Of a stretch of DNA of 64,000 nucleotides, positions 22,887 through 58,862 are shown piece after piece. The position numbers were made by a program, and so were the translations under genes. A model generated the notes under the pieces. The model worked only from the letters and a program-made list of their open reading frames with translations, did not search any database and was not told the DNA's origin. This DNA is from Paragordius varius (lineage: Eukaryota > Animalia > Nematomorpha): assembly GCA_964247055.1 (NCBI GenBank), contig OZ176053.1, positions 1,054,001 through 1,118,000 of the forward strand, given 5' to 3'. Each line of letters starts with the position of its first letter. Position 1 is the first letter of the stretch.

Positions 22887-23577
22887 ATGTACAAACAAAT
22901 CCATATTATCTTAACGCTTTGCATCGCCTTATTTGCAAGTAAAACCATTATAACTATAATATTTTTAAACTTAACCCGTATTACCTATATATTGGCATAC
23001 TATATTTTTTATTTCGATAAATTTATTTTTCTTTCACGAATATGAAGGTTTGTCAATGGCATGCAAATTTAACAATCAAAATATTCGGCCTGACAGATCC
23101 ATCATCCTAAGATCAGATATATCGAACAAACATGTTTTCTCGGATTGTGCGGATATGACAATAAAATTCAACATTCAACCTAAATTAAACGGTAAACAAG
23201 AGTTTTTTAAAAAACAAAAATAATACCCATATAATGTCGCATTATATTAACTAAAATGTTTAAAATACTTTAGTAATAAGACAAATAAGCACAAATACAC
23301 GCACAGATTACATCTCAACAGAAATTCCAAGTTCTGGTGGCTCGCCAGTCATTATGACTGACCAAGCTATTGAATATAGAGTGGCCCCTGGCTATGCTGG
23401 CCCCATTACTGTAACGGTAAGTTTTTTTAAATATTTTTTTATAAAGAGACTTTTCGTTTTATTGAATAATACATTAATGCAATTTATATATATATTTTAT
23501 AATGTATTTTAAATTTTGTATAGTATGCTCGAGATCGATTATTCATTCCTACTGTAGTTTCGCCAAGAAGAAATTAA
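22887..23577 (+). CDS. Small putatively secreted protein, copy 1 (130 aa; exons 22887-22938, 23048-23191, 23274-23416, 23524-23577)
   Basis: GT-AG introns in phases 1,1,0 give MYKQIHIILTLCIALFASLSMACKFNNQNIRPDRSIILRSDISNKHVFSDCADMTIKFNIQPKLNVIRQISTNTRTDYISTEIPSSGGSPVIMTDQAIEYRVAPGYAGPITVTYARDRLFIPTVVSPRRN*; basic-hydrophobic signal-peptide-like N-terminus. Confidence 0.9.
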
Positions 23578-26500
23578 TTAAATAATGAAGAATCTGTTTT
23601 TACTAACTAATGTATATAAACACTCTTTTATATATTTTGATTGTAAATTATAAATAAATTATTTATTATATATTTTATCATTGATTTTTGAATGAAACTA
23701 TTTTAGATCAAGAATATATATGGTTAGAAAATAAAAATAATAACTTGGAAAGCTTTGAGGCTACATTTTACAGCAAACTATTCATTCTTGTCAAAACCAG
23801 ATGTTTATTTCAGTTGTGTTTTAGAGCTGGAAACCTATCTTTTTCCTCTAATATTAGAGAACAATAATTATTTATTAAATTTAACTACTTTCAAACTGAT
23901 ATTTATTTAATAATTATATCCAAAAATCATTGAGTCCAAAAAATAAATATGTTAAAAAGTTTCAAAACATTTTTACGGAATGACAAAACTATCTTCATTT
24001 CATTAACAAGCTTTACTGTGTTTTAGGGGAGAACTTTGCCAATCTTTGTAAAAAATGAAAAATAAATCCTATTGTGCCTTATATATTTGATCATTATCGT
24101 ATTAGTCGTCAATGTGTAAAGATCATTTACATCGTCTGTATAGTATTGCTACTATCGCTCTCCAATTATAAACTATTAAAAACAAGTTCCAACAAATAAT
24201 TATTTTTTTATCTAACAACCTTCTTTAACACAAAAATTATCCTAAGTAAATATTATTCTGATAGATAAATATATCGGGATTATACAAGGTGTCGGTTTTC
24301 GGCCTAAAGTGTGGTTGTTGCTTCATACCGAAGAATCACAAAAATTAATATTATGCTAAATAAATTTTTTAGAGATAATTTGATGTTTCATTCCAAAAAA
24401 TATCTTTGATATATATCGCGTAAATTATATTTTAAAGCAATAATATTTATATATATTTTATAATTTACATACGAAAGTAAGTTTTTATAAAATCCGGTAA
24501 ATTTCTAAAAATAAACTCATTAATGTTGAGATTCCGCAAAAGGAATATATTCACGGTGAATAAAGAAAGTTTTTAATAAAATGCATACACGGAATTTCGG
24601 AAAATTATTGAAACGTTATGATATTTTAAAATATGGTCGATACTTGTAAAAAACATATTTTTATAAATTGGCGATGCTTACCTCAGAATAAATTGTTTGT
24701 CTTCAAATTTAAATATAAAAATTGTGAATCTATAACAAAGCTTATCGTGAGGTGATAGAAATGTTAATTATCTTCGAATTATCAAGAAAAGGTGTTTTAT
24801 AATATCTTAAAGCGTTTCTATATTGTTTCGCCATGCTTTAAATTACCAACATGTATACGTACGATTCAATAAAATTTTGCCAAAAATTAAATATGAAAAG
24901 TATGCGTTTTTTTATTTTCTGTTTTAATATTATAATTGAGCAATTAAAAATTCTTATCACGCAATCTTGGCATTTTGCGCTTTATTTTAAAAGGATTAGC
25001 CTAGCCCATTTTAAGGGGTCAGAAAATCGGCTATTTTCAGGACCTAGATTTAAAATTCAATATAAATATTATTTGCTATTCAAATATAGTTCAGATATAA
25101 ATTAATGATATTTTTAATAACAAAGAATTTAGTCTTTAGCCAAAAAAATAAATTTGATATAACGTGCGCTAATTTTGGGATTTTCAATAAGGGAACAAAC
25201 ACTACAAAAGTGGAATTAACTTACTTAAATTACTCCTTAAAACCCAAAACCAAAAAGACCATGATAATTCAGATAGATTTTTCTTCCAGTATCCTTTATC
25301 AGGTTTTTTATACACCGGGTTTGGTGTACTGTGCAATATACTAATAATGTACCTTAAGTAATTAGTGCTTGTATGGTTTCATTTGGGATAAATATGCCAT
25401 TTATTAATTAACATTAACCAATATCAGAAAAACTAAAACAACTTTCAATATTAAACACATTCAACCTTGATATTCATTATAAAGGTATACAATATATGAG
25501 TAGAAACATTTATATAGTGAGTCCGAGTTGCATAATTAATATCATTGTTTTCTTAAGAAACAAACCTGTAACCAGTAAAATTTTATACGGCACACCGTAA
25601 AAAGCAATATTATGTTTAATACTTGTATATATTTGTTCTTTGCTGTGCAAGTTTATATTATATTAAATTTAAATGATGACAGAATATTAATTATTCTTTT
25701 TCACTAAAACAAAAATTGTGAGCTAAAATCTTTAACGGCAAGATGGTTGATTTTTTGCATTTAAAAGCTTATTACTAGAATTTATGATTTATAAACATTG
25801 TTCCTAGGGCTTTTCCCCGTATCAGATTTTAATTAGAATGCGATTTATCTGCTATAGAATTAATTTTGTTTAACTGATTTTAATAATGAAATCGCTTTAA
25901 GGGAGAAAATATTAGATAACTTATAAATATTTTAAGTCACTTTTTGTGATTACATAAGATTTACAAGCCGCTAATATTGTATCGAAGCTATTTTGGCATT
26001 TATTCTTTGGATTAAAATTATACTAAAATCGGCTAATTTATTTAATGATATTGAAGACTAAGGTAAATCGTGATTGGAATTAAGTAGATAATCAATAGAG
26101 ATAACATATTTATAATTTAATGCTATACGCTATTCATTACTAGAAAATAGATCAAATAAAAATTCATGTAGTGATGGACTTTTTTCGAAATTTCAAAGGC
26201 AGAATAAGAAAAATAAAAGGCTTTTTCAAAATTTAGATGTTATTATAAAAATTTTTTAACCATTATAGATATAGACATTATCCAATAATACATACTAAAC
26301 AAACTCAATTTTTACCCTGATTTTTTTGTAGGAAGTATACTGACGTATTATTTTAACTATCAATTTTACTTGTTTATTTACTTTGGTGGTTGTCTGCACA
26401 AATTGACGCATTCGATTAAATAAACAATGACCAAGGCTTTAGCTCACCAAAAACAAATCAAACCGGTTTATATCCGGTCCTTATTTGAAGGCTATAAAAG

Positions 26501-26581
26501 GGCAAATTTTTCCACGAAATTTATAAACATTTTTTATCATCTTTTCTGTGAAATAAACACTACCGAATTCCTAAAACTACT

Positions 26582-27276
26582 ATGTACAAACAAATCCATA
26601 TTATCTTAACGCTTTGCATCGCCTTATTTGCAAGTAAATCCGTTATAACCATAATATTTTTAAACTTAACATATATACCCAATATAATTGCACATATTTT
26701 TTATCCTTTAAATTTATATTTCTTTTTACGAATATGAAGGTTTGTCAATGGCATGCAGATTTAACAATCAAAATATTCGGCCAGACAGATCCATCATTCT
26801 ACGATCAGAAATATCAAACAAACATGTTTTCACGGATTGTGCGGATATGACAATAAAATTCAACATTCAACCTAAATTAAACGGTAAACAAGAGTTTTTT
26901 TAAAAAACAAAAATAATACCCATAGAATGTCGCATTTATATTGAATAAAATAATTGTTTAATAATACTTTAGTGATTAGAGAAATAAGCACAAACACACG
27001 CACAGATCGCATCTCAACAGAAATTCCAAGTTCTGGTGGTTCGCCAGTCATTATGACTGACCAAGCTATTGAATATAGAGTGGCCCCTGGCTATGCTGGC
27101 CCCATTACTGTAACGGTAAGTTTTTGTAAATATTTTTTAGAAAGAGATGTTTCGTTTTATTGAATAATACATTAATGCACTTTAAATCAATATTTTTATA
27201 ATGTATTTTAAATTTTGTATAGTATGGCCGAGATCGATTATTCATCCCTACTGTAGTTTCGCCAAGAAGGAATTAA
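26582..27276 (+). CDS. Small putatively secreted protein, copy 2 (130 aa; exons 26582-26633, 26740-26883, 26973-27115, 27223-27276)
   Basis: Same exon sizes (52/144/143/54), intact splice sites and frame; a ~13-bp deletion just upstream of the ATG does not touch the CDS. Confidence 0.9.
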
Positions 27277-28225
27277 AATCAAATAATGAAGAATCTGTTT
27301 TTATTAATGTATATAAACACTCATGTATATATTCTGTTTATAAATTAAAAATAAATTATTTATTTTATATTCAATTATGATTTTTGGATGAAACGATTTT
27401 AGATGCAGGCAAACAAATATATACACCGTTAGAAAATAAAAAAATAACCTGGAAAGCTTTGAGGCTACATTTGGCCAGCCACTTGATTTTATTCATGTTA
27501 AACCCTGCTGCTTATTTCAGTCGTGTTTTAGAGCTTGTCACAATTTTAGACTCTATAAATTAAAAAATATATTTTTTATATAACATAGGGAGACAATGTT
27601 TGATAATTAAAAATCAACTTAAAAACAGTTGGTTATTTAAAAAATGTCACGAAATGTCATTGTGTACAAAAAAATATAAATGTAATAAAGTGTCTAATGA
27701 TTTTTATGGAATCAAACCTAATTTAATATATTACACTAGACAAAAAATATTTTCTGCTATTCGAGTTTACCCTTTTCAGATGTTTACTTTCATTTTAAGT
27801 AAATCCGAATAAAAATTTATGATTCTGCCTAAGATTTATTTGTATTTCGGTTTTTTACGATTTTGGGCCCCTATCAATATTTTAATAAAAAATATATTTT
27901 TTTTAAAATAAACAGCAAATGCCCATTTTTATTTATTGTTCGAAAGAGTAATAAAAACTCTATTGGATACTATATTTTACATCTATAGTTCATAATGTAG
28001 ACTGAAACGACAAACCCGCTAAGCGAGAGCGTTCTTGTCAATAAATATATTTTTAAAACCAATGGACAAAAATAGCCCAAACTTTGTTAAGATGGCCATT
28101 TCCAAAATCCATTTTAGTTTTATTGATATTACCATTTCATCGATATTAAATATTTTCTTTAAAAGAGTTTTAATTATAAAATTACAAAGACTAGAAATAA
28201 AGTGTAAAGCATTTTTGATCTTTTA

Positions 28226-28509
28226 CATTAAAAATTCAAATTATGCGGACAAAATAAATATAAAGACAAATATTTTTTTTAAAAGACAACCAACCATACC
28301 TTTTAAACTTTAATGTTTCCCATATAAGCTATTTAGTTACCGTTGTAAAATATGTAACTTATTGTGTTAGTATTATATCTATATTTCACACTTTGTTAAT
28401 TTAAACAACAAGTTATATAGGTATAAATCTAGATTTAAAAAGTATGGTTGTCTATTTGAAAAAAATATTTGCCTTTATATTACAACGTTTTGTCCGTATA
28501 TTTTTACTG
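28226..28509. mobile_element. Old CAGTAAAAA-family MITE that is part of the ancestral repeat unit (also after copies 3-6, truncated after copy 7)
   Basis: TA-flanked; left cattaaaaattcaaattatgcggacaaaa..aaagacaacc and right ggttgtc..acgttttgtccgtatatttttactg correspond to the TIRs of 21016-21304. Confidence 0.75.
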
Positions 28510-28895
28510 TATAACCATATGTAATAAATGAAGCTTTATTCCAATCTATGATTAGGAATTAATTTAGCGCGCACCGAGTTGCATTCTAACTATTAATGTT
28601 TGCTTAAGAAACAAATATTTTTGGAGCGCTGTTTAATTCCACTGTTTCCCGTAAAATATCATACGGCACACCGTAAAAAGGAATTTTATGTTAATATTTT
28701 ATATATTAGTTCTTTGCTATGCAAGCCTATAAATATATAACATATAATTTGGTCGATAAATTATTAATTATCGTTTTTGACAAAAACAAAAATTGGGAGT
28801 TAAAATGTTGTTAGCGCATTTGACTAATTATAATACGATTCATAAAACATTAATGTTAAAAGATTTCGAAAACGAAATTGTTTTATAGTTTAACT

Positions 28896-31484
28896 CAGTG
28901 GTACTCAAACCGCGGCCCGCGGGCCGCATGCGGCCCTAAGAGTGCTTTAAAATTGCCCTATGACCATATTGATACTTAAATTATTTTCTTGATTGATGAA
29001 TTTTTTCAATACACATAAACGAATTGTCGCTTATTTTAATACTTAAGATTTAATTTTGGTAATTTTTATTCTTTACCCAATTTAAAATGTAGAGAAATTT
29101 CCCTACATTACATCATGTATCCTTTGTTTTATCAAAAATTTATTTTTTTGTTAAATGGATATAAATATTTGGTAAAGAATGGAAAAAACAAGAGCTCATT
29201 GGTATTAACAATATCATATTCATCAAAAGTTTAAGAATTACCATAGAGCTCTTGTTTTTTCCATTCTTTACCAAATATTTATACCCATTTAACGAAAAAA
29301 ATAACTTTTTGATAAAATAAAGGATACATGACTGTTTCATTTCGGCACACGTTGTTTCTGTATTCTATTTTTTTCTATTCTGAAATTTTAATTGTGTGTA
29401 TTTTAACAAGCCTTTCACCCAAACTTGCATATACATATTCTTTTCGTTGCTATCCTGCATTATTTTTTATAACTCATTCCCATAAAATATTTTTCAAATC
29501 AACATCATTATATTTCGACCTGTTTTTTATAGCATGAATTCAAATTATATTCCTATTTTTTAAAAAAAATTACATAATATTTAAACATAAATTCAAAGGA
29601 TGACATCTAATGCTAAAAAACGCAAAATTATCCGATGAAAATCGCTCCTTTAAAAAAGATTGGAAAGAAACTGTCGTTTAAAATAATATTATTGTTACCT
29701 GCCGTTATGTAAGGACAGCATAATTATAAAAAAATATAATATTGAAAGACATTTTAAAATCCATCATTCTTATAAATTACCAGAAAATCATGAGAAAAGA
29801 AACGGAAAAAAAATTAAGAATTATACCAAAAAGAAAAATCTATTATATCCATATCTTTAGCCAGGAGAAAGCTGTAATATTAGCTTCGTATGCTATATTT
29901 TAGGAAAAATATGAAACCGTTTACTGATTCCAACTAATAAAAGAATGTCTAATAAATGGTTGCACTTTTTTATTTGATAAATTCCATAATACAAATTATG
30001 AGGCAAATTAAAAAACTTCAACTTTATGATTCAACATGTGCCCGACGATATGAAAATATGGCTAATATATTTTTAACGATACATTATTGGCTCTGAAAAA
30101 TTACAAGTATTGCTATTGATTCTAGCACTGATATTAGTTCAACACCTCAACTTGCGCTCTTCGTAAGGATTTTACAACGACATAATCAAAGATGAATATT
30201 TAAATTTTACCAATGAATAATATCACAAAAAGAAGTGATTTTCTCGAAATAATTATTTTTTTGGATAATAATCGTATATCTATGAAAAAATTGGTTTCGA
30301 TGCACTGGCTGTCCCTCTATGATTGGAATAAACAACGGATTTATTCCTCTTCTAAAAAAGAAATATAATTTGCAAAATATTTATCCTTTCACTGCTTTCA
30401 TTATAATTAACTACATCCATGGCAGAGAATTCAATCATCATAAATTCAAAAACCTTCTGAAAGATATCCACAGTGAATTTGATGATATTCTTTTGTAGTC
30501 GGCTGTGAGATGGTTAAACCTTAGCAAAGTATTAAATAGATTTTTTTTACGACAAGAAATTCTATTATTTAGAAAAGATAACAGAAAGTTTGACGAGGAA
30601 ATTAATTGTGACAAATAGTGGGTGTTATTAGCCTACCTTTGCCACATTACTTATAAACTTAGAATTTTTGATATAAGTCTTCAAGGGAGCAAAATAATAA
30701 CCCAATTTTTCTAAATTATTTGCTTTTGAAGAGAAAATAATATATAAACAAGATTTTATAATTAAAACATTCCTATATTTTCCAACACTTAAAACGATTC
30801 ATGTAAATCTGGATTTACCGCGGTGATTAATTTAATAATAGACAATCATTTAACATTTTTATCTAATGAGATGAAATTAGATTTCAAGAATTAATAAATA
30901 TTATAAATTGCTTAAAACTCGTTGAAAATCCATGGCATATGAATATATCCAATAGTATTTCGGTTTTGATCAGGCGCATATCATTGAAGAATTCGTAGAT
31001 TTTAAAAATGCCAATTTGGAGGCTATACTCAAGGAGATTCGTGGGGAAGAAGATATGTAGAGTTTTGGCTAGATGTGCCAAATAAAAAAAAATGTGCTCA
31101 AGTCATTTTAAATGTTTCCCTCAACTTACACGTGTGAGACGGCGTATTCAAAAATGAAATATGTCAAGAATACATACAGAAATCGCTTAACCGATGATCA
31201 TATGGACGAGGTATTAAGTGGCCTGTCATGAGGCGAAACAAATTAGTCAAAAATTATTGATTAATATCAAAATAAATGTTGTTAATTTGAACTAAACGGT
31301 GCAAAACGAGTTTTTAGCTGGATTTACATGTAATCAGCACATAATTCTTTGTGCTGATGTAGAGTATAAATATGTGCATTTTGTAAAATAGTATGGAGTA
31401 TTTTTCATTATAAGGTTCATGATGGCCCTCGAAAAAAATATATATTTTATTTGGCCCGTTAAATTTTTTTGGTGAGTACCACTG
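28896..31484 (+). mobile_element. hAT Buster/SPIN-like element (defective), insertion A in the array
   Basis: TIRs CAGTGGTACTCA / TGAGTACCACTG; 8-bp TSD GTTTAACT (28888-28895, 31485-31492); empty site ttttatagtttaacttctag in other units. Transposase relic MTSNAKKRKLSDENRSFKKDW, IDSSTDISSTPQLALFVR, AVRWLNL, RNRLTDDHM. Confidence 0.95.
29113..29332. repeat. ~220-bp near-perfect inverted repeat (arms ~90 bp, loop ~35 bp) inside hAT insertion A
   Basis: tcatgtatcctttgttttatcaaaaa...ggaaaaaacaagagctc pairs with gagctcttgttttttcc...gataaaataaaaggatacatga; absent from the other hAT copies. Confidence 0.9.
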
Positions 31485-32171
31485 GTTTAACTTCTAGTTA
31501 TAATTCAATGTCTATTTGTGGTTACACAAGATTAATAAGCAACTAATATTTTATCGAGCTATTTTTCCATTTATTATTTGAACCAAATTTATATTGAAGT
31601 TGGTTAATTTTTAAGCGCTCATATTAATGAGCACTGCATGATTGGTGGAAGGAATTGAATATAGATAATATAATTATAATTTGAAAATTTGCCATAAGCG
31701 ATTTCCAAAAATCAAAAGCATTGAAAATTAATCCATGAGTAAGCGGGTTTTTTGAAGTTATGTGCGTTTAATGATAAATCGCTCTTTAAAATTTAGGAGC
31801 ACTTTATAAATATTAAAAAAAATTTCTTCTCTAATTAAAATCAAATATTTACGACAATCATCCAATAATACATAATAAACAAACTATTATACCTTGATTT
31901 GTGGGTAGCATAGTTGGTGTTTATTATTTTAACTATGAATTTTACTCGTTTATTTATTTTGGTGGTTGTCTGCACTAATTGACGCAATTCGATTAAATAA
32001 ACAATGACAAAGTCTTTAGCTCACCAAAAACAAATCAAACCGGTTTATATCCGGTCCTTAATTGATGGCTATAAAAGGGCGGGTTTTTCTACGAAATTCA
32101 TAAACATTTTTTATCGACTTTTCCCTGAAATAAACACTACCTAATTCCTAAAACTACTAACCCTGTCTACA

Positions 32172-32866
32172 ATGTACAAACAAATCCATATTATCTTAAC
32201 GCTTTGCATCGCCTTATTTGCAAGTAAATCCGTTATAACTATAATATTTTTAAACTTAACCAGTATTACCTATATATTGGCATACATTATTTTTTATTAT
32301 AAATTTGTTTTTCTTTCACGAATATGAAGGTTTGTCAATGGCATGCAAATTTAACAATCAAAATATTCGGCCTGACAGGTCCATCATTCTACGATCAGAA
32401 ATATCGAACAAACATGTTTTCACGGATTGTGCGGATATGACAATAAAATTCAACATTCAACCTAAATTAAACGGTAAACAAGAGTTTTTTAAAAAAACAA
32501 AAATAATACCCATAGAATGTCGCATTTATATTGAATAAAATAATTGTTTAATAATACTTTAGTGATTAGAGAAATAAGCACAAACACACGCTTAGATCGC
32601 ATCTCAACAGAAATTCCAAGTTCTGGTGGTTCGCCAGTCATTATGACTGACCAAGCTATTGAATATAGAGTGGCCCCTGGCTATGCTGGCCCCATTACTG
32701 TAACGGTAAGTTTTTGTAAATATTTTTTAGAAAGAGATGTTTCGTTTTATTGAATAATACATTAATGCACTTTAAATCAATATTTTTATAATGTATTTTA
32801 AATTTTGTATAGTATGGACGAGATCGATTATTCATCCCTACTGTAGTTTCGCCAAGAAGGAATTAA
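32172..32866 (+). CDS. Small putatively secreted protein, copy 3 (130 aa; exons 32172-32223, 32330-32473, 32563-32705, 32813-32866)
   Basis: Intact four-exon model; variants K24, L76. Confidence 0.9.
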
Positions 32867-33579
32867 AATCAAATAATGAAGAATCTGTTTTTATTAATGT
32901 ATATAAACACTCATGTACATATTCTTTTTATAAATTAAAAATAATTTATTTATTTTATATTCAATTATGATTTTTGGATGAAACGATTTTAGATGCAGGC
33001 AAACAAATATATACATCGTTAGAAAATAAAAAAATAACTTGGAAAGCTTTGAGGCTACATTTGGCCAGCCACTTGATTTTATTCATGTTAAACCCTGTAT
33101 TTCAGTCGTGTTTTGGAGCTTGTCACAATTTTAGACTCCTAAAATTAATAAATATACTTTTTATCTAACATAGGAGGACAATGTTTGATAATTAAAAATC
33201 AACTTACAAACAGTTGGTTATTTAAAAAATTATGTCTCGAAATGTCATTGTGTACAAAAAAATATAAATGTTATAAAGTGTCTAATGATTTTTATGGAAT
33301 CAAACCTAATTTATTATATTACACTAGACAAAAAATATTTTCTGCTATTCGAGTTTTAGCCTTTTCTGATGTTTACTTTCATTTTAAGTAAATCCGAATA
33401 AAAATTTATGATTCTGCCTAAGATTTATTTGTATTTCGGTTTTTTTACGATTTTGGGCCCCTTATCAATATTTTAATAAATAATATATTTTTTTAAAATA
33501 AACAGCAAATGCCCATTTTTATTTATTGTTCGAAAGACTAATAAAAACTCTATTGCATACTATATTTTACAATGTAGAC

Positions 33580-37614: not shown

Positions 37615-38312
37615 ATGTACAAACAAATCCATATTATCTTAACGCTTTGCATCGCCTTATTTGCAAGTAAATCCGTTATAACCAAATTAATTTTAAACTT
37701 ACCAAATATACCCAATATAGTTGCGCACTATATTTTTTATCCTTTAAATTTATATTTCTTTTTACGAATATGAAGGTTTTTCAATGGCATGCAAATTCAA
37801 CAATCAAAATATTCGGCCTGACAGATCTATCATTCTACGATCAGAAATATCAAACAAACATGTTTTCACGGATTGTGCGGATATGACAATAAAATTCAAC
37901 ATTCAACCTAAATTAAACGGTAAACAAGAGTTTTTTAAAAAAACAAAAATAATACCCATAGAATGTCGCATTTATATTGAATAAAATAATTGTTTAATAA
38001 TACTTTAGTGATTAGTGAAATAAGCACAAACACACGCACAGATCACATCTCAACAGAAATTCCAAGTTCTGGTGGCTCGCCAGTCATTATGACTGACCAA
38101 GCTATTGAATATAGAGTGGCCCCTGGCTATGCTGGCCCCATTACTGTAACGGTAAGTTTTTGTAAATATTTTTTAGAAAGAGATGTTTCGTTTTATTGAA
38201 TAATACATTAATGCACTTTAAATCAATATTTTTATAATGTATTTATGATTTTGTATAGTATGGCCGAGATCGATTATTCATCCCTACTGTAGTTTCGCCA
38301 AGAAGGAAGTAA
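37615..38312 (+). CDS. Small putatively secreted protein, copy 4 (130 aa; exons 37615-37666, 37776-37919, 38009-38151, 38259-38312)
   Basis: Intact four-exon model; variants F19, K24, S68, H78, K130. Confidence 0.9.
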
Positions 38313-42443: not shown

Positions 42444-43141
42444 ATGTACAAACAAATCCATATTATCTTAACGCTTTGTATTGCCTTATTTGCAAGTAAA
42501 TCCGTTATAACCAAATTAATTTTAAACTTAACAAATATACCCAATATAATTGCACACTATATTTTTTATCCATTAAATTTATATTTCTTTTTACGAATAT
42601 GAAGGTTTGTCAATGGCATGCAGATTTAACAATCAAAATATTCGGCCTGACAGATCCATCATTCTACGATCAGAAATATCAAACAAACATGTTTTCACGG
42701 ATTGTGCGGATATGACAATAAAATTCAATATTCAACCTAAATTAAACGGTAAACAAGAGTTTTTTAAAAAAACAAAAATAATACCCATAGAATGTCGCAT
42801 TTATATTGAATAAAATAATTGTTTGATAATACTTAAGTGATTAGTGAAATAAGCACAAACACACGCACAGATCACATCTCAACAGAAATTCCAAGTTCTG
42901 GTGGTTCGCCGGTCATTATGACTGACCAAGCTATTGAATATAGAGTGGCCCCTGGCTATGCTGGCCCCATTACTGTAACGGTAAGTTTTTGTAAATATTT
43001 TTTAGAAAGAGATGTTTCGTTTTATTGAATAATACATTATGGCACTTTAAATCAATATTTTTATAATGTATTTTAAATTTTGTATAGTATGGCCGAGATC
43101 GATTATTCATCCCTACTGTAGTTTCGCCAAGAAGGAATTAA
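42444..43141 (+). CDS. Small putatively secreted protein, copy 5 (130 aa; exons 42444-42495, 42605-42748, 42838-42980, 43088-43141)
   Basis: Intact frame; intron-2 acceptor is acttAAG instead of actttAG; variants S68, H78. Confidence 0.85.
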
Positions 43142-43852
43142 AATCAAATAATGAAGAATCTGTTTTTATTAATGTATATAAACACTCATGTATATATTCT
43201 GTTTATAAATTAAAAATAAATTATTTATTTTATATTCAATTATGATTTTTGGATGAAACGATTTTAGATGCAGGCAAACAAATATATACATCGTTAGAAA
43301 ATAAAAAAATAACTTGGAAAGCTTTGAGGCTACATTTGGCCAGCCACTTGATTTTATTCATGTTAAACCCTGCTGCTTATTTCAGTCGTGTTTTAGAGCT
43401 TGTCACAATTTTAGACTCTATAAATTAATAAATATATTTTTTATCTAACATAGGAGGACAATGTTTGAATTAAAAATCAACTTACAAACAGTTGGTTATT
43501 TTAAAAATTATGTCTCGAAATGTCATTGTGTACAAAAAAATATAAATGTTATAAAGTGTCTAATGATTTTTATGGAATCAAACCTAATTTATTATATTAC
43601 ACTAGACAAAAAATATTTTCTATTCGAGTTTTAGCCTTTTCTGATGTTTACTTTCATTTTAAGTAAATCCAAATAAAAATTTATGATTCTGCCTAAGATT
43701 TATTTGTATTTCTGTTTTTTTATGATTTTGGGCCCCTTATCAATATTTTAATAAAAATTATAATTTTTTAAAATAAACAGCAAATGCCTATTTTTATTTA
43801 TTGTTCGAAAGAGTAATAAAAACTCTATTTCATACTATATCTTACATCTATA

Positions 43853-46257: not shown

Positions 46258-46819
46258 ATGTAGACTGAAACGACAAACCCGCTAAGCGAGAGCGTTCTTG
46301 TCAATAAATATATTTTTAAAACCAATGAACAAAAATAGCCCAAACTTTGTTAAGATGGCCATTTCCAAAATCCATTTTAGTTTTATTGATATTACCATTT
46401 CATTGTAATATTTTCTTTAAAAGAGTTTTAATTATTAAATTACAAAGACTATAAATAAAGTGTAAAGCATTCTTGATCTTTTACATTAAAAATTCAAATT
46501 ATGCGGACAAAATAAATAAAAAGACAAATATTTTTTTTAAAGACAACCAACCATACTTTTTAAACTTTAATGTTTCCCATATAAGCTATTTAGTTACTGT
46601 TGTAAAATATGTAACTTATTGTGTTAGTATTATATCTATATTTCACACTTTGTTAATTTAAACATAAGGTGACCAGATTTTTTGAAGGAAAAAGCGGGAC
46701 AAATCTGAGAAAAGGGGGGGGGGGGGTCATTAAGGGGAACAACCAAAAATTTTTATACAAAAAATTTATTGTAATAATTATTTATTTATAATACAAATAC
46801 ATTATAAATATAAAAAATT

Positions 46820-47650
46820 TGTACCTTACAGGTTGTTTGTACCTTATTCAATAAATTTACATGTGCACGAACAAAGGGTGAAGTGATAGTAATATTCTAG
46901 AAAAAAATAATAAAGACGAAATCATCACAAAGTGCGCTGGGTGATGCAAAAAGCAGCACAAAAAATATTTTTAACAATTTAGCGAATAATCTTAATCAAA
47001 ACATTATTGGTAGATACACAACGCTATTCTAACAGCTACTGATTTGTTACCCCTGGATGTGGAAAATATAGATGTTAAAATGCTTGGATATTGTCGAACT
47101 GTTGGTTAGCTCTTTTGCCAGCGATTGAAATATTTATAAAAATGTGATCTCCTAGAATCCTATTTTTTATCACAGGACAAAGGTCAAAATTCCAAGTCAA
47201 AAAAGGTTAGAAAATAATTTTATACCATTACCTAATCGTTATAAAGCATCCAGAAAAACAAGGCTCAATGAATAGCCAGAATATAAGAATGTTTTATACA
47301 AACAGAAACTATTATTTGGAAGACAAGACGGTGCACAATGATACTTTTTTTTGCAGTCTCATTACAAAATAAATATATTGAATGAAAACTTACATTATGA
47401 ACAACAGAAAAAAATACGTAGGATAGAAATGGTTAAAATAATCCTTTTTAAACAAATTATGTTCCATACAATAATATTTTTATAGTAGAATTTGCATTAA
47501 CTTTACCAGAACCACTACTATTGAACGCGTTTTTCCACAGTAAATTAAGTAAGGACACGGAATCAAATTTAAATGTTAGATAAAAGCTATTTTATGGGTT
47601 CAAATATAATTTGACAAATTAAGAAGACTTATACAATATTTTAAGTAATT
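46820..47650 (+). pseudogene. Inverted, divergent, multiply deleted second copy of the Blackjack transposase
   Basis: Collinear plus-strand blocks match the reverse complement of ~49220-47750, e.g. aaatttacatgtgcacgaacaaagggtgaag, acaacgctattctaacagctactgatttgttacccctggatgtggaaaat, ggttagaaaataattttatacca, gaacgcgtttttccacagtaaat. Confidence 0.9.
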
Positions 47651-47696
47651 TTGTTTATTTTTTAACATAAAAACTTTATAAATATAAGAAAATATT

Positions 47697-49536
47697 TTAT
47701 TCTTTGGTATATTTTTTGTTTGAGTGAATGCGTTTTAGCAGATTGTCATCATTTTTTAAAATATTGTACAAGTTTTCACAAGAATTTGTCAAATTATATT
47801 TGACAGATAAAACGGCCTTTAAAGTTTCAACATTTAAATTTGATGTTTCCGATGTCCACACCTGATTTACTGTGGAAAAAACGCGCTCAGTAGCAGCGTT
47901 TGTTCCAGGTAAAGATAGTGCGAATTCCACAAATTTTTAAACTATTATTGTATGTATTCAAAATGTTGAAATATTTCCAACCATTTCTTTTCTACTGTAT
48001 ATTTTTCTTTTGTCCATAATTTAAGTTTTTCATTATTAATATATCTTTTAACTAATGATTCTTCAAAGATCATTTTCTGAAAGATTACTTTTTGAGAATT
48101 TTTGGGAACAGATATAATCAAATGATTTTTGAACATCGCACCAATTAAATTCTGATTTTAATGTTATCCAATGAAAATGATCAATTTCATTGAATTACGT
48201 CGTCCAGTCTTCCAAATAATTTTTACAGTTTGTATAAAACATTTAATATGGTACAGGATATCTTGGCGATTTATTAAGCCTTGTTTTTCTAAATTATTTA
48301 TTATATTGCGGATAATTATTGGTATAAAATTATTTTCTAACCGTTCTTGACATTGAAATTTTAGGTTAGTGACTTCATTGGCTAATTCGATTGCCGAAAT
48401 TTTGTCACCTTCTATAAATTTAACATTTTGAAAGAGAGAAGCTTGATTATTAAGAATTCTAACCATATTTTTGAAGAATCAGTTTCAAAAAACTTTTTTA
48501 AAGTTGTAGGACATTTGTCCTGTAAAATTTTTTAAAGGATCATACATTTTTAAAATTCTTTCGATAGCTGGTATAAAAGCTAACCAACGAGTTTTACAAT
48601 ATCCAAGGATTTTTTGATATTGAACTTCTACATTTCACAGAATTCTTTAAGCGTTTCAACACGTACTGTGTAGATATGAAATAGGAATATATTTTAACAA
48701 CTACATTTTCCACATCTAGGGGTAACAAATCAGCAGCTGTTAGAATAGCGTTGTGTATTATATGCGCTGCACATCCAACGCCAATAATGTATGATTAAGA
48801 TTATCTGTTAATTTATGAAAAATATTTTTTGTTCCCTCCTTGCTTTTCCACCAAAGTTCGTATTGGTGTTGTCAGCGCAATATGCGATAATTTTGTCTTT
48901 TAAATTATTTTTTTCTAGAATATGCATTATTGAAGTAAATATTATTTCGGAGTTTTCACCGGGTAAAGAAATTAAATCTAAAATTTTATTTTTACTCCGG
49001 TTTCTGAATCAAAATATCTTATTAAAGTGGGAAATAATATTGTTTCATGGTGATTTGATGCATTAGAGTATAGGGATAAGAAATTATTTTTAGCAAATCT
49101 TTTTGTATTTCAGAAAATGCATGTGGCGAAAGGACATTGCACACAATGGCTTCAGCCTTTTTACGGGCACATGTAAATTTTTTATGGAATAACGTGCGAA
49201 TAACCTGTGAGGTACAGTCCATAGATCTAAAGGAATGATTGTGATTAACGGCGTGAAAAGATAACACGCCCTCAGTTAGTGCCAAATTCTTTTCTTCCTC
49301 TCCAAAAGCGGTTTTTCGAAAAAAAATCGCTCATTTTATAAGATGATGCCGCCATATCTAAACATTTTTTATGTTTGTGTTTTTCCATATGCTTTGTAAT
49401 ATCATGCTTGCCCCATGTGATAGGGTGAATTCCCCTCGCATATAAGACATTTAACAGATGATTCATATTTCGTTTTTTTGATAAAAGGAAAATTCATTAA
49501 TTCATCGTTGAATTTACAACCTCGTTTTGTGCTCAT
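47697..49536 (-). pseudogene. Frameshifted hAT transposase of the Blackjack-like element
   Basis: Starts MSTKRGCKFNDEL; consecutive track ORFs give KHDITKHMEKHKH, EGVLSFHAVNHNHSFRSMDC, FTCARKKAEAIVCNVLSP and the hATC dimerisation motif LSLPGTNAATERVFS. Confidence 0.9.
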
Positions 49537-50580
49537 TTTTATAAACTACTATTAGTACAATACCTTAATTTTCTGGAATAAATGTGTAAGGTACCGATTT
49601 GTGGTATCAATTTGTCTTTTAAGCTCCCGATTTGTGGTATTAATTTGGCTTTTTAATAATGTTAAGTGATAAAACTAAAATTTTAACATAGTAAATATTA
49701 TATTACCTTAATTTTCTGAAATAAACGTGTAAGCTACCGATTTGTGGTATTAATTTGTCTTTTTAATAATTATGACAGTAGTAGTAGGAAGCAAAGTGTA
49801 TATTCATATAGTATAAATTCGAAAAAAATAAATATTTTTAATTTAAAAATAAAAAATTTTAATTTAAAATTGAATAGATTTTAAAGATATATAATGATAA
49901 AAAATTTAAACGGATAAAAAAAATTTATTTGTTTTAAAAAAAAATTTTTTTTTATATAATCGTGAAAAAGCGGGACATTTTAAATTGTAGCGGGAAGCGG
50001 GACAAAGTGTGAAAAAGCGGGACTGTCCCGCCAAAAGCGGGACGTCTGGTCACCTTATTTAAACAACAAGTTATATAGGTATAAATCTAGATTTAAAAAA
50101 CATGGTTGTCTATTAGAAAAAAATATTTGCCTTTATATTACAACGTTTTGTCCGTTTATTTTTACTGTATAACCATATGTAATAAATGAAGCTTTATTCC
50201 AATCTATGATTAGGAACATTTAATTTAGCGCGCACCGAGTTGCATTCTAAATATTAATGTTTGCTTAAGAAACAAATATTTTTGGAGCGCTGTTTTATTC
50301 CACTGTTTCCCGTAAAATATCATATGACACACCGTAAAAAGGAATTAATATTTTATATATTGGTTCTTTGCTATGCAAGCCTATGATATATAACATATAA
50401 TTTGGTCGATAAAATATTAATTATCGTTTTTGACAAAAACAAAAATTGGGAGTTAAAATGTTGTTAGCGCATTTGACTAATTATAATACGATTCATAAAA
50501 CATTAATGTTAAAAGATTTCGAAAACGAAATTGTTTTATAGTTTAACTTCTAGTTATAATTCAATGTCTATTTGTGGTTA

Positions 50581-52070
50581 TCAAGGTGTATCAAGAAAAG
50601 GGTGTAGCAGACCCACGTCGCCACTGTCCACAAAAGACGTCCCTTGCTGCCCTTCGATACACCAGTCCATGGTGGTTCAGTGACAGCCGTCTAGTTGCGT
50701 CTCGGGGGTGGGGTTGACTTCTAGGGATATAATGATAAGTTTATATAAAGATATGTATAAAATAAAGTGAAGATATATTTGGCATTTACAGGTAAAATAA
50801 ATCCAATCGACTATATCCTATATATTTCTACTAATGTTTCATAGATCTAATATTCTTTAATGTATAACGTATGGATATTCTAGCTTAATTCAACCGAATG
50901 CATATTTATTATACTGTGACAGTATTTATCTTGTTTAATAGATTTTATAAACCAATATTTAACTTTTGCTAGTGGTATGTATTTCCGTTTTTAATCCATG
51001 TTTTTTATAGTCTATAAATCCCAGTTGGTATTCATAAAGTGTCTGATATTTAAATCAATTTTTCTCCTTTTATATGTGAATCTAACATTTATAGACCAAT
51101 AAATTAAATTTTCTTTAATTAATCTCTTAATTAAAACAATTATTTCCCTTTGTCCTCTTAAGGTACCGCATTCGTTATCTTTAATCTATAAGTTGTTATT
51201 TGCCTTTATAATACATTTAAAATTCCGCATTATAAATCTTTTTTTATTTCTCCTAGCAAATTAACAGTAGCAAATGGTTAAAATTATATATATTTAATGA
51301 CTTTTTTTATATAAATAATAAATGTGTAAAATCTAACAGTAGCCAATGGTTAAAATTTAACAAACTTTTTAATGGCTATTTTTAAAAATAATAAATGTGT
51401 AAAATCTAAAGGACATTTAAAATAATGTAAAATATAAAAATGCTTATCTCTAAGTTACGCATGGAAGTTCCAAAGGGACTACGTTCTGCTTGGTCGTAGC
51501 AACGAAACGTAAACTTTCCCGTGCCTGTGTCAATCTTTCCTCCTATGCGACTACAGCGGCACGCCCCACAGCGCTCCTATCATTATGCTAAAAAGCAAAG
51601 GCATACAAATGGGGAACCTAAGTGAGTGCATATAGAGTGACACCTTAGACGAAGCGGTACACATTTCGCTAAGCTACAGGCTATCCGGGAAAGATCGTTA
51701 CATCAGCGTCATGCGGTCTTCCAACCAATACTGGCATGCAATACATTCCCTTGCGTGTTTGTTGAAAATATTTATTTTTAGTCATAGTATTACCATTATT
51801 ATAAAGTTATCTCATTTTAGGCAAAGAATTACAATGACAATGTTCGCAAGTCCCAGTAAAAACAATTTTCATTCAATAAGCGTTCTTGTATATAAGGCGT
51901 AATTAGGATTATCATATCTTATAAATAGTGCATGAAGTTTTAAGTATTTTAGAAGCCAAAAAACTCGTTTTCCAATTTTCAGCGAATAAAAGCATATAGT
52001 CGAGAAATGTGTAAAAAATCATTATTAATATTTGAAGACATTAAAACCAGCTCGTTAGTCAATCGTTAAA
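50581..52070 (-). mobile_element. 1.49-kb insertion unique to one unit; probably a non-autonomous RTE-like retroelement derivative
   Basis: Empty site gtggtta|cacaag in all other units, TA duplicated, no TIRs. Minus strand shows NECGTLRGQREIIVLIKRLIKE (~51110-51180) and YQLGFIDYKK (~51001-51030), resembling RTE RT motifs QCGFR.GRGTRE.I and FIDY.KAFD; GQWRRGSATP near the 3' end. Classification is by-eye inference. Confidence 0.6.
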
Positions 52071-52715
52071 TACACAAGATTAATAAGCAACTAATATTTT
52101 ATCGAGCTATTTTTCCATTTATTATTTGAACCGAATTTATATCGAAGTTGGTTAATTTTTAAGCGCCCATATTAATGAGCTCTGCATGATTGGTGGAAGG
52201 AATTGAATATAGATAATATAATTATAATTTGAAAATTTGCCATAAGCGATTTCCAAAAATCAAAAGCATTGAAAATTAATCCATGAGTAAGCGGGTTTTT
52301 TAAAGTTTTGTGCGTTTAATGATAAATCGCTCTAATTTAGGAGCACCTTATAAATATTAAAAAAAATTCTTCTCTAATTAAAATGAAATATTTACGACAA
52401 TCATCCAATAATACATAATAAACAAACTATTATACCTTGATTTGTGGGTAGCATAGTTGGGGTTTATTATTTTAACTATGAATTTTACTTGTTTATTTAT
52501 TTTGGTGGTTGTCTGCACTAATTGACGCAATTCGATTAAATAAACAATGACAAAGTCTTTAGCTCACCAAAAACAAATCAAACCGGTTTATATCCGGTCC
52601 TTAATTGATGATCTATAAAAGAGCGGGTTTTTCTATGAAATTCAAATACATTTTTTATCGACTTTTCCCTGAAATAAACACTACCGAATTCCTAAAACTA
52701 CTGACCCTGTCTACA

Positions 52716-53412
52716 ATGTACAAACAAATCCATATTATCTTAACGCTTTGCATCGCCTTATTTGCAAGTAAATCCGTTATAACCATAATATTTTTAAACT
52801 TAACAAATATACCCAATATAATTGCACACTATATTTCTTATCCTTTAAATTTATATTTCTTTTTACGAATATGAAGGTTTGTCAATGGCATGCAGATTTA
52901 ACAATCAAAATATTCGGCCAGACAGATCCATCATTCTACGATCAGAAATATCGAACAAACATGTTTTCACGGATTGTGCGGATATGACAATAAAATTCAA
53001 CATCCAACCTAAATTAAACGGTAAACAAGAATTTTTTAAACAGACAAAAATTTTACCCATAGAATGTCGCATTATATTGAATAAAATAATTGTTTAATAA
53101 TACTTTAGTGATTAGAGAAATAAGCACAAACACACGCACAGATCGCATCTCAACAGAAATTCCAAGTTCTGGTGGCTCGCCCGTCATTATGAGTGCCCAA
53201 GCTATTGAATATAGAGTGGCCCCTGGCTATGCTGGCCCCATTACTGTAACGGTAAGTTTTTGTCAATATTTTTTAGAAAGAGATGTTTCGTTTTATTGAA
53301 TAATACATTAATGCACTTTAAATCAATATTTTTATAATGTATTTTAAATTTTGTATAGTATGGACGAGATCGATTATTCATCCCTACTGTAGTTTCGCCA
53401 AGAAGGAATTAA
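52716..53412 (+). CDS. Small putatively secreted protein, copy 6 (130 aa; exons 52716-52767, 52877-53020, 53109-53251, 53359-53412)
   Basis: Intact four-exon model; variants S94, A95. Confidence 0.9.
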
Positions 53413-55705
53413 AATCAAATAATGAAGAATCTGTTTTTATTAATGTATATAAACACTCATGTACATATTCTTTTTATAAATTAAAAATAATTTATTTATT
53501 TTATATTCAATTATGATTTTTGGATGAAACGATTTTAGATGCAGGCAAACAAATATATACATCGTTAGAAAATAAATTATAACTGGGAAAGCTTTGAGGC
53601 TACATTTGGCCAGCCACTTGATTTTATTCATAAACCTGCTGCTTATTTCAGTCGTGTTTTGGAGCTTGTCACAATTTTAGATTCTATAAATTAATAAATA
53701 TATTTTTTATCTAATATAGGAGGACAATGTTTGATAATTAAAAATCAACTTACAAACAGTTGGTTATTTAAAAAATTATGTCTCGAAATGTCATTGTGTA
53801 CAAAAAAATATAAATGTTATAAAGTGTCTAATGATTTTTATGGAATAAAACCTAATTTATTATATTACACTAGACAAAAAATATTTTCTGCTATTCGAGT
53901 TTTAGCCTTTTCTGATGTTTACTTTCATTTTAAGTAAATCCGAATAAAAATTTATGATTCTGCCTAAGATTTATTTATATTTCGGTTTTTTACGATTTTG
54001 GGCCCCTTATCAATATTTTAATAAAAAATATATTTTTTTTTAAATCAACAGCAAATGCCCATTTTTATTTATTGTTCGAAAGAGTAATAAAAACTCTATT
54101 GCATACTATATTTTACATCTATAGTTCATAATGTAGACTGAAACGACAAACCCGCTAAGCAAGAGCGTTCTTGTCAATAAATATATTTTTAAAACCAATG
54201 GACAAAAATAGCCCAAACTTTGTTAAGATGGCCATTTCCAAAATCCATTTTAGTTTTATTGATATTACCATTTCATCGATATTAAATATTTTCTTTAAAA
54301 GATTTTTAATTATAAAATTACAAAGACTATAAATAAAGTGTAAAGCATTTTTGATCTTTTACATTAAAAATTCAAATTATGCGGACAAAATAAATATAAA
54401 GACAAATATTTTTTTTAAAAGACAACCAACCATACTTTTTAAACTTTAATGTTTCCCATATAAGCTATTTAGTTACCGTTGTAAAATATGTAACTTATTG
54501 TGTTAGTATTATATCTATATTTCACACTTTGTTAATTTAAACAACAAGTTATATAGGTATAAATCTAGATTTAAAAAGTATGGTTGTCTATTTGAAAAAA
54601 ATATTTGCCTTTATATTACAACGTTTTGTCCGTATATTTTTACTGTATAACCATATGTAATAAATGAAGCTTTATTCCAATCTATGATTAGGAATTTATT
54701 TAGCGCGCACCGAGTTGCATTCTAACTATTAATGTTTGCTTAAGAATCAATATTTTTGGAGCGCTGTTTAATTCCACTGTTTCCCGTAAAATCTAAAACG
54801 GCACACCGTAAAAAGGAATTTTATGTAAATATTTTATAAATTGGTTCTTTGCTATGCAAGCCTATGAATATATAACATATAATTTGGTCGATAAAATATT
54901 AATTATCGTTTTTGACAAAAACAAAAATTGGGAGTTAAAATGTTGTTAGCGCATTTGACTAATTATAATACGATTCATAAAACATTAATGTTAAAAGATT
55001 TCGAAAACGAAATTGTTTTATTAACTTATAGTTATAATTCAATGTCTATTTGTGGTTACACAAGATTAATAAGCAACTAATATTTTATCGAGCTATTTTT
55101 CCATTTATTATTTGAACCGAATTTATATTGAAGTTGGTTAATTTTTAAGCGCCCATATTAATGAGCACTGCATGATTGGTGGAAGGAATTGAATATAGAT
55201 AATATAATTATAATTTGAAAATTTGCCATAAGCGATTTCCAAGAATCAAAAGCATTGAAAATTAATCCATGAGTAAGCGGGTTTTTTGAAGTTTTGTGCG
55301 TTTAATGATAAATCGCTCTTTAAAGTTTAGGAGCACTTTATAAATATTAAAAAAAATTTCTTATCTAATTAAAATCAAATATTTACGACAATCATTCAAT
55401 AATACATATTAAACAAACTATTATACCTTGATTTGTGGGTAGCATAGTTGGGGTTTATTATTTTAACTATGAATTTTACTTGTTTATTTACTTTGGTGGT
55501 TGTCTGCACTAATTGACGCAATTCGATTAAATAAACAATGACAAAGTCTTTAGCTCACCAAAAACAAATCAAACCGGTTTATATCCGGTCTATAAATGAT
55601 GGCTATAAAAGGGCGGGTTTTTCTACGAAATTCATAAACATTTTTTATCGACTTTTCCCTGAAATAAACACTACCGAATTCCTAAAACTACTAACCCTGT
55701 TTACA

Positions 55706-56403
55706 ATGTACAAACAAATCCATATTATCTTAACGCTTTGCATCGCCTTATTTGCAAGTAAATCCGTTATAACCATAATATTTTTAAACTTAACAAATAT
55801 ACCCAATATAATTGCACACTATATTTTTTATCCTTTAAATTTATATTTCTTTTTACGAATATGAAGGTTTGTCAATGGCATGCAGATTTAACAATCAAAA
55901 TATTCGGCCAGACAGATCCATCATTCTACGATCAGAAATATCAAACAAACATGTTTTCACGGATTGTGCGGATATGACAATAAAATTCAACATTCAACCT
56001 AAATTAAACGGTAAACAAGAGTTTTTTAAAAAAACTAAAATAATGCCCATAGAATGTCGCATTTATATTGAATAAAATAATTGTTTAATAATACTTTAGT
56101 GATAAGAGAAATAAGCACAAACACACGCACAGATCGCATCACAACAGAAATTCCAAGTTCTGGTGGTTCGCCAGTCATTATGACTGACCAAGCTATTGAA
56201 TATAGAGTGGCCCCTGGCTATGCTGGCCCCATTACTGTAACGGTAAGTTTTTGTCAATATTTTTTAGAAAGAGATGTTTCGTTTTATTGAATAATACATT
56301 AATGCACTTTAAATCAATATTTTTATAATGTATTTTAAATTTTGTATAGTATGGCCGAGATCGATTATTTATCCCTACTGTAGTTTCGCCAAGAAGGAAT
56401 TAA
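55706..56403 (+). CDS. Small putatively secreted protein, copy 7 (130 aa; exons 55706-55757, 55867-56010, 56100-56242, 56350-56403)
   Basis: Intact four-exon model; variant T80. Confidence 0.9.
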
Positions 56404-58175
56404 AATCAAATCATGAAGAATCTGTTTTTATTAATGTATATAAACACTCATGTATATATTCTGATTATAATTTAAAAATAAATTATTTATTTTATATTCA
56501 ATTATGATTTTTGGATGATATGATTTTAGATACAGGCAAACAAATATATACATCGTTGGAAAATAAATTATAACTGGGAAAGCTTTGAGGCTACATTTGG
56601 CCAGCCACTTGATTTTATTCATGTTAAACCCTGCTGCTTATTTCAGTCGTGTTTTGGAGCTTGTCACAATTTTAGACTCTAATTAATAAATATATTTTTT
56701 ATCTAACATAGGGAGACAATGTTTGATAAAAAAATCAACTTACAAACAGTTGGTTATTTAAAAAATGTCTCGAAATGTCATTGTGTACAAAAAAATATAA
56801 ATGTAATAAAGTGTCTTATGATTTTTATGGAATCAAACCTAATTTTATATATTACACTAGACAAAAAATATTTTCTGCTATTCGAGTTTTACCCTTTTCT
56901 GATGTTTACTTTCATTTTAAGTAAATCCGAATAAAAATTTAAACTTATTGTGATAGTATTATATCTATATTTCACAGTTTGCCAATTTAAACAACAAGTT
57001 ATATATATAGGTATAAATCTAGATTTTAAAAGTATGGTTGTTTATTAGAAAAGAATATTTGCCTTTATATTACAACGTTTTGTCCGTATATTTTTACTGT
57101 ATAACCATATGTAAAAAATGAAGCTTTATTCCAATCTATGATTAGGAACATTTAATTTAGCGCGTACCGAGTTGCATTCTAATTATTAATGTTTGCTTAA
57201 GAAACAAATATTTTTGGAGCGCTGTTTAATTCCACTGTTTCCCGTAAAATATCATACGGCACACCGTAAAAAGGAATTTTATGTTAATATTTTATAAATT
57301 GGTTCTTTGCTATGCAAGCCTATGAATATATAACATATAATTTGGTCGATAAAATATTAATTATCGTTTTTGACAAAAACAAAAATTGGGAGTTAAAATG
57401 TTGTTAGCGCATTTGACTAATTATAATACGATTCATAAAACATTAATGTTAAAAGATTTCGAAAACGAAATTGTTTTATAGTTTAACTTCTAGTTATAAT
57501 TCAAGGTCTATTTGTGGTTACACAAGATTAATAAGCCACTAATATTTTATCGAGCTATTTTTCCATTTATTATTTGAACCGAATTTATAATGAAGGTTGA
57601 TTGTTAAGCGCCCATATTAATGAGCACTGCATGATTGGTAGAAGGAATTGAATATAGATAATATAATTATAATTTGAAAATAAATTTGCCATAAGCGATT
57701 TCTAGAAAATCAAAAGAATTGAAAATTAATCCATGAGTAAGTGGGTTTTTTGAAGTTTTGTGCGTTTAATGATAAATAATTAAACGTTTAAAATTTTGGA
57801 GCACTTTATAAATATTAAAAAAAAAATTCTTATCTAAAAATCAAATATTCACGACAATCATCCAATAATACATGTTAAACAAACTATTTTACATTGGTTT
57901 GTGGGTAGCATAGTTGGGGTTTATTATTTTAACTATCAATTTTACTTGTTTATTTACTTTGGTGGTTGTTTGCAGTAATTGACGCAATTCGATTAAATAA
58001 ACAATGAAAAGGGGTTAAGCTTACCATAATATAAATCAAACCGGTTTATATCCGGTTCTTATTTTCTGAAGGGTATAAAAGGGCGGGTTTTTCCACGAAA
58101 TTCACAAACATTTTTTGTCGCATTTTTTGTGAAATAAACACCACCAAATTCCTAAAACTACTAACACTAGCCAAA

Positions 58176-58862
58176 ATGTACAAACAAATCCATATTATCT
58201 TAACGCTTTGCATCGCCTTATTTGCAAGTAAATCCGTTATAACCATATTAATTTTAAACTTAACAAATATACCCAATATAATTGCACACTATATTTTTTA
58301 TCCTTTAAATTTATATTTCTTTTTACGAATATGAAGGTTTGTTAATGGCATGCAGATTTAACAATCAAAATATTCGGCCTGACAGATCCATCATTATACG
58401 ATCAGATAAATCAAACAAACATGTTTTCTCGAATTGTGCGGATATGACAATAAAATTCAACATCCAACCTAAATTAAACGGTAAACAAGAGTTTTTTAAA
58501 CAGACAAAGAATGTCGCATTAGATTAAATAAATAAATGTTTAATAATACTTTAGTGATTAGTGAAATAAGCACAAACACACGCACAGATCGCATCTCGAC
58601 TGAAATTCCAAGTTCTGGTGGCTCGCCCGTCATTATGACTCCACAATCTATTGAATATAGAGTGGCCCCTGGCTATGCTGGCCCCATAACTGTGACGGTA
58701 AGTTTTTGTAAAAATTTTCTTTATAAATAGATTTATCGTTATTTCTGTATAATACATTAATGCACTTACTTTATTTCGATATTATAATGTATTTTATATT
58801 TCGTATAGTATTCCCAGGATCGATTATTCATCCCTACTGTGGTTTCGCCAACAAGGAATTGA
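58176..58862 (+). CDS. Small putatively secreted protein, copy 8 (130 aa; exons 58176-58227, 58337-58480, 58555-58697, 58809-58862), most divergent copy
   Basis: Intact frame and splice sites despite a shortened intron 2; variants L20, I38, D41, K42, S49, N50, S68, P95, S97, S115, Q116, T128; TGA stop. Confidence 0.9.

Follow-up and report, generated by a model that had tools for sequence, protein, structure and literature searches.

A tandem family of compact four-exon genes for a small, apparently secreted protein in the horsehair worm Paragordius varius

A 64,000-nucleotide (nt) stretch of the Paragordius varius genome (the window: C4:1054001-1118000, where C4 is contig OZ176053.1 of the 110.5-Mb, 44-contig assembly GCA_964247055.1) contains eight copies of one gene unit, which a repeat search places on the plus strand between 22.8 and 58.9 kb. 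Together with relatives outside the window, these copies probably make up a real, functional and taxon-restricted family of compact four-exon genes for a secreted protein, which would have expanded in tandem with each gene keeping a TATA promoter of its own.

Each unit opens with an ATG and 52 nt of coding sequence followed by GTAAAT, continues through two exons of 144 and 143 nt, each preceded by AG and followed by GT, and closes with a 54-nt exon that holds the stop codon (Table 1). An earlier note on this stretch, made from the letters alone, had described eight genes of this plan with GT-AG introns and without frameshifts, premature stops or lost splice dinucleotides, and splice models built by script agree with it throughout. 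The 52/144/143/54-nt exon plan is identical in all eight copies, GT..AG borders 24 of 24 introns, and the 393-nt coding sequence (CDS) runs for 130 amino acids (aa) without a stop or frameshift in every copy. The units follow one another at spacings of 3.7, 5.6, 5.4, 4.8, 10.3, 3.0 and 2.5 kb, in that order, within an AT-rich region (26-30% GC). As the note had also remarked, the list of open reading frames (ORFs) over the array contains exon-plus-intron read-throughs only, of 38-109 aa. An upstream in-frame ATG, which gives 108-aa ORFs in c5 and c7, was considered as the start codon and rejected, because its frame is closed in the other copies, the region carries insertions and deletions (indels), and the ATG lies upstream of the TATA box, which would then fall inside the ORF.

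Table 1. Gene copies and other features of the array. Positions are those of the window; each gene copy starts at its ATG and ends with its stop codon.
Feature	Position	Strand	Exons	Remarks
Copy c1	22887-23577	+	22887-22938, 23048-23191, 23274-23416, 23524-23577	GT-AG introns, 130 aa intact; older, ~91% nt identity to c2
Copy c2	26582-27276	+	26582-26633, 26740-26883, 26973-27115, 27223-27276	Core clade
Copy c3	32172-32866	+	32172-32223, 32330-32473, 32563-32705, 32813-32866	Core clade; intron 1 of c1 type (conversion mosaic)
Copy c4	37615-38312	+	37615-37666, 37776-37919, 38009-38151, 38259-38312	Core clade
Copy c5	42444-43141	+	42444-42495, 42605-42748, 42838-42980, 43088-43141	Core clade
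Copy c6	52716-53412	+	52716-52767, 52877-53020, 53109-53251, 53359-53412	Core clade
Copy c7	55706-56403	+	55706-55757, 55867-56010, 56100-56242, 56350-56403	Core clade
Copy c8	58176-58862	+	58176-58227, 58337-58480, 58555-58697, 58809-58862	Older, ~89% nt identity to c2; TGA stop
Promoter and 5′ untranslated region of c2	26400-26581	+		Repeated before every copy; TATA, private motifs, conservation
Non-autonomous element, c2-c3 spacer	29353-30102	.		750 bp, dispersed; 549 first-look genome candidates, of which 40 scored, at 81-97% identity
hAT transposon insert, c5-c6 spacer	46665-50056	-		3.4 kb, block unique among the spacers; ORF 47697-47930 (-) matches the hAT dimerisation domain (PF05699), E 1.2e-5

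A DNA search of the whole assembly raises the number of close copies to twelve, with two beyond the eight just past the window end and two on a second contig, C2. The first pair is inverted (C4:1119457-1120151 and 1122146-1122827, 88% nt identity), and the C2 pair is in tandem (12855286-12855970 and 12860440-12861115, 74% nt identity). All four extra copies have exons of the same sizes as the array, GT-AG introns and intact frames, so that 36 of 36 introns are GT-AG and 12 of 12 close copies are intact. A thirteenth member, which is divergent, emerges from protein and profile searches of the genome with the exon peptides; it lies at C4:4182384-4182736, about 3 Mb from the cluster. Its exons 2 and 3 measure 147 and 134 nt with the intron phases kept, and at 42-48% identity it retains both Cys residues and the pattern RTD..I...E..S.GSP...I.YRV..GY.G.I.V. 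At this locus (L038:1487-1853; G000:C4:4182370-4182736) exons 2 and 3 are recognisable, and a short first exon may begin at L038:1336. DNA, protein and profile searches of the genome find no family match beyond these 13 members, and a search for a retrocopy, in which the coding sequence would be contiguous, finds none. The array of eight that the earlier note described is thus correct for the window, but it belongs to a 46-kb C4 cluster of ten genes (c1 to c10), in a family of 13 that also includes the C2 pair and the divergent C4 paralogue.

The case for function is made by the way in which the copies differ. An alignment of the twelve close copies contains 29 distinct gap runs. All of them map to introns (318 columns) and the exons (393 columns) are free of gaps, a placement with P of about 7e-11 if indels were uniform, the events not being fully independent. 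This bears out the earlier proposal that introns gather indels and coding frames do not. The ratio of nonsynonymous to synonymous divergence (dN/dS) is 0.11-0.46 for pairs within the C4 cluster, apart from 0.76 for c8 and c9, and 0.48-0.82 between the C4 cluster and the C2 pair; dS reaches 0.39. Relative to the C2 pair the exons are 78-85% identical without gaps and the introns 61-71% identical with gaps. Conserved splice sites and frame, dN/dS below one and exons better conserved than introns are the marks by which a functional coding gene is recognised, and this comparison indicates that the family consists of functional genes under purifying selection.

The upstream regions are conserved as well. 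TATAAAA lies 89-103 nt upstream of each ATG, and AATAAA lies 44-159 nt past the stop codon, both where such signals are to be expected. From -120 to -61 before the ATG the copies are 87-92% identical even to the C2 paralogues, which is above the identity of the exons. An 18-nt motif, AACCGGTTTAYATCCGGT (26461-26478 in c2; CCGG-N7-CCGG), is exact in 11 of the 12 copies and occurs nowhere else in the 110-Mb genome. Farther upstream, a 32-nt block that starts with TAATTGACGCAAT (26400-26432 in c2) is likewise private to the gene family, and in it we take TGACGCAA to be a bZIP-like core and ATAAACA a forkhead-like one. These two private blocks are candidate binding sites of a factor that would drive the gene family.

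The 130-aa precursor starts with MYKQ and has a basic n-region (MYK), a 15-residue hydrophobic core (hydropathy peak of 3.2 over residues 5-19) and then S-M-A directly before Cys23. These features fit the S-x-A form of the -3/-1 rule, in line with the signal peptide and the cut at ..SMA|C that were proposed earlier. A scan of the precursor finds no later hydrophobic segment, glycosylphosphatidylinositol-like tail or retention signal, and the C-terminus is hydrophilic. By rule, therefore, this is the layout of a classical secreted protein, with a cleavable signal peptide and no other membrane anchor, and the protein would be secreted after removal of 22 residues. The mature protein has 108 aa, a mass of 12.1-12.3 kDa and an isoelectric point of 9.2-10.2; it lacks Trp and N-x-S/T sequons and is rich in Ile, Arg, Thr, Ser, Asn and Pro. 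Its two Cys residues, at positions 23 and 51, are invariant in 13 of 13 members, as the earlier claim of two invariant Cys requires (a third, Cys12, lies inside the signal peptide), and they probably form a single disulfide. The sequence alternates in a way that is typical of about eight beta strands, as judged by crude propensity, which suggests a beta-rich single domain. Co-folding of the exon-2 and exon-3 peptides as two chains scored 0.00, which is no answer and is evidence neither way.

Searches for relatives outside the genome were run exon by exon, with peptides and profiles of exons 2 and 3 rather than with the full spliced protein. Word-indexed searches with both exons in an index of 5.8 billion proteins yield no candidate; each exon was queried inside a stop-free stretch, so that proteins of 130 aa fell within the lengths considered. 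A 13-sequence exon-3 profile, run with HMMER exhaustively against 1.84 billion representatives, finds no credible relative, and seven weak matches were rejected as multi-stretch repeat proteins aligned over 14-27 residues. PDB sequences give chance matches only to the two exon profiles, Pfam gives no match to the exon peptides, and the ESM Atlas gives no usable match. For the exon pieces, the earlier remark that the protein could not be matched to any family familiar to its author therefore stands across all five resources. The claim that the family is lineage-specific holds at the level of sequence, at which no relatives are found, and does not extend to the level of fold.

Fold is where the strongest alternative lies. 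The protein could be a stand-alone domain that belongs, after extensive divergence, to a known superfamily of small beta-sandwiches, CUB-like or other, and that is recognisable by structure only, a reading that we regard as possible but rather unlikely. Its length of 108 aa, its beta-rich character and the spacing of 27 residues between Cys residues, with a Cys at the domain start, resemble what is generally known of CUB domains, the spacing being like that of their first Cys pair. In this genome, true CUB domains are likewise encoded by two exons that meet near the middle of the domain. Two multi-CUB loci that served as the comparison set (L049 and L050; G000:C3:7867000-7875000 and C4:3549500-3556000) have this junction near model position 48-50. 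The resemblance extends to spermadhesins and other stand-alone CUB proteins, which are likewise secreted single domains of 110-130 aa and 12-16 kDa from clustered genes and in which the mature chain begins with a Cys and has another about 27 residues on. However, a six-frame search of the whole genome with the Pfam CUB model (PF00431; threshold > 21.4 bits) recovers 36 CUB exons, none of which lies at C4:1076887-1122827 even at an E value of 10. Local hhalign of the 13-member mature alignment against nine spliced CUB domains of this genome gives a probability of 0.07% and an E value of 0.7. The mature protein has two Cys residues instead of the four of a CUB domain, the second Cys pair and the SP.YP motif being absent, and it carries a 17-aa C-terminal extension on an exon of its own. 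With no match to the Pfam model, to the profiles or to PDB sequences, CUB membership is rejected at the level of sequence. If the CUB-like alternative were nevertheless true, the family would not be new in a deep sense.

The relationships among the copies record how the array arose. A maximum-likelihood tree built on promoter-plus-gene sequences, with the C2 pair as outgroup, unites c2 to c7 in a young core clade (support 98/97), the remaining members of the cluster (c1, c8 and the inverted pair) being older. The core copies differ by 0.8-3.6% in CDS, which is consistent with the recent amplification that had been proposed. Intron 1 occurs in two haplotypes that are 20-27% apart, one of which is common to c1 and c3 only (22939-23047 and 32224-32329). 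Between these two copies intron 1 shows 6 differences in 106, while introns 2 and 3 of c3 are core-like, with 0-1 differences. Copy c3 is thus a mosaic produced by gene conversion or crossover, since it carries a c1-type intron 1 in an otherwise core copy. These patterns indicate that the family has grown by tandem duplication and has been partly homogenised by gene conversion.

Several points weigh against the reading of the family as functional secreted-protein genes. Recent duplicates might remain intact even if selection were absent, and the argument for selection therefore relies chiefly on c1, c8 to c10, the C2 pair and the divergent paralogue. Recognition of the signal peptide relies on the -3/-1 rule rather than on SignalP. 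Variation in the protein is concentrated in residues 39-50 and 61-70, where comparison of the cluster with the C2 pair gives a pN/pS of 2.5-3.2, but these patches are a hint only, because they were defined after seeing the data and contain few sites. A search of public sequencing runs finds near-identical DNA of the gene in twelve of them (X1 to X12), filed under nine organism labels, none of which is on record as RNA, and a few small runs labelled as RNA contain none of the gene's words. These twelve runs behave as DNA, as seen in four of them, whose contigs run from exons into introns. These four runs contain no exon-exon joint that fits the model; the single joint seen, from 26798 to 26982, is CT..AG in one contig and misfits it. 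The case for splicing and expression is consequently a comparative one.

Such points would suit an alternative in which the copies are recent, non-functional or silent DNA that owes its intactness to youth and gene conversion. The core copies are only 1-3% apart, gene conversion is active, and no RNA evidence appears among the runs searched. We nevertheless consider this very improbable. The older members, with dS of 0.12-0.39, are all intact with dN/dS below one, exons are conserved well above introns and the promoter above exons, all indels avoid the exons, and a paralogue as distant as the divergent C4 gene still keeps its frame and intron phases.

The public runs also bear on the assembly itself. 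In the contigs of four independent ones, identical sites show several paralogue variants, including AAA/GGG at 26504-26506 and a 13-nt indel before the ATG. Although near-identical tandem repeats are error-prone in assemblies, it is hardly credible that the array is an artefact of fewer copies, given that every unit has its own single-nucleotide differences, spacer length and private transposon insertions, that contigs from independent runs carry paralogue-specific variants, and that the assembly resolves 110 Mb into 44 contigs. The nine labels on the runs with the gene may reflect hosts carrying the worm, mislabelled samples or related species. In run X7, the contigs match short pieces of exon 2 only and then diverge.

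Between the genes, the spacers are built on a common backbone of about 1.8 kb and vary in the insertions that they carry. Relatives of the 750-bp element of the c2-c3 spacer occur in the c3-c4, c4-c5 and c5-c6 spacers, and part of the insert between c1 and c2 is another dispersed repeat. The earlier estimate of about 15 kb of transposon DNA in the spacers is upheld in part: transposon DNA is present and the lengths by which the spacers exceed the shortest one add up to about 18 kb, but only part of this excess is verified as transposon.

Elsewhere in the window, a single-exon ORF of 240 aa at 6858-7580 on the minus strand encodes a globin domain (PF00042, E 1.6e-22) preceded by about 115 N-terminal residues that match nothing. 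This neighbouring gene and the other, unassigned ORFs of the window are uninformative on the function of the array gene. The mitochondrial contig (C44) carries cox1 with TGA codons, and beside it lie perfect zero-loop palindromes, the arms of which measure 131 and 97 nt; such palindromes have been described for Nematomorpha (PMC6649704). Upstream of cox1, 52-nt hairpin repeats also recur every 72 nt in an array (L056; G000:C44:5980-10320). Published hairworm assemblies measure 200-300 Mb (bioRxiv 10.1101/2024.06.11.598342), by which a 110-Mb genome would be unusually small for a hairworm.

If the family is read as functional secreted-protein genes, each gene would produce, from its own conserved TATA promoter, a 130-aa precursor that loses a 22-aa signal peptide to become a 12-kDa, basic, unglycosylated single-domain protein rich in beta strands and probably clamped by the disulfide Cys23-Cys51. 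The high copy number, on which the earlier proposal of dosage selection would rest, may serve high output from one specialised secretory cell type. Our committed guess is that the product would be an abundant extracellular binding or coat protein, with a conserved core on which the two variable patches may form surfaces that tune what the protein binds. As to its biological role, we give about equal and tentative weight to the parasite-host interface and to a reproductive, egg-string or body-surface product, and leave the rest to something else. A more far-reaching proposal, which we think improbable, is that the protein represents a new fold or superfamily that occurs in horsehair worms alone. 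A dedicated promoter would then drive its mass production, and it would be delivered into the insect host as an effector that evades host immunity or manipulates behaviour, the two variable patches forming the surface that binds the target.

Taxon-restricted tandem arrays of small secreted-protein genes are a common genomic theme that is familiar in parasites. The secreted-protein arrays of parasites and gall formers, such as the Hessian-fly SSGP genes, schistosome micro-exon genes and nematode effector clusters, share with the present family compact tandem genes, a conserved leader and promoter, local variable patches and a lack of outside relatives. They differ in that the mature protein here is largely conserved, with dN/dS below one, instead of hypervariable, and that micro-exons are absent. 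The theme is thus familiar, but the family itself appears to be new. It is invisible to ORF-based annotation, and gene finders miss such compact, intron-split genes. To our knowledge, horsehair worms, a phylum of parasites that manipulate their hosts, have received very little study, and hardly any of their secreted molecules are known. An amplified, selected and apparently secreted family without relatives is therefore a concrete candidate for work on expression and localisation.

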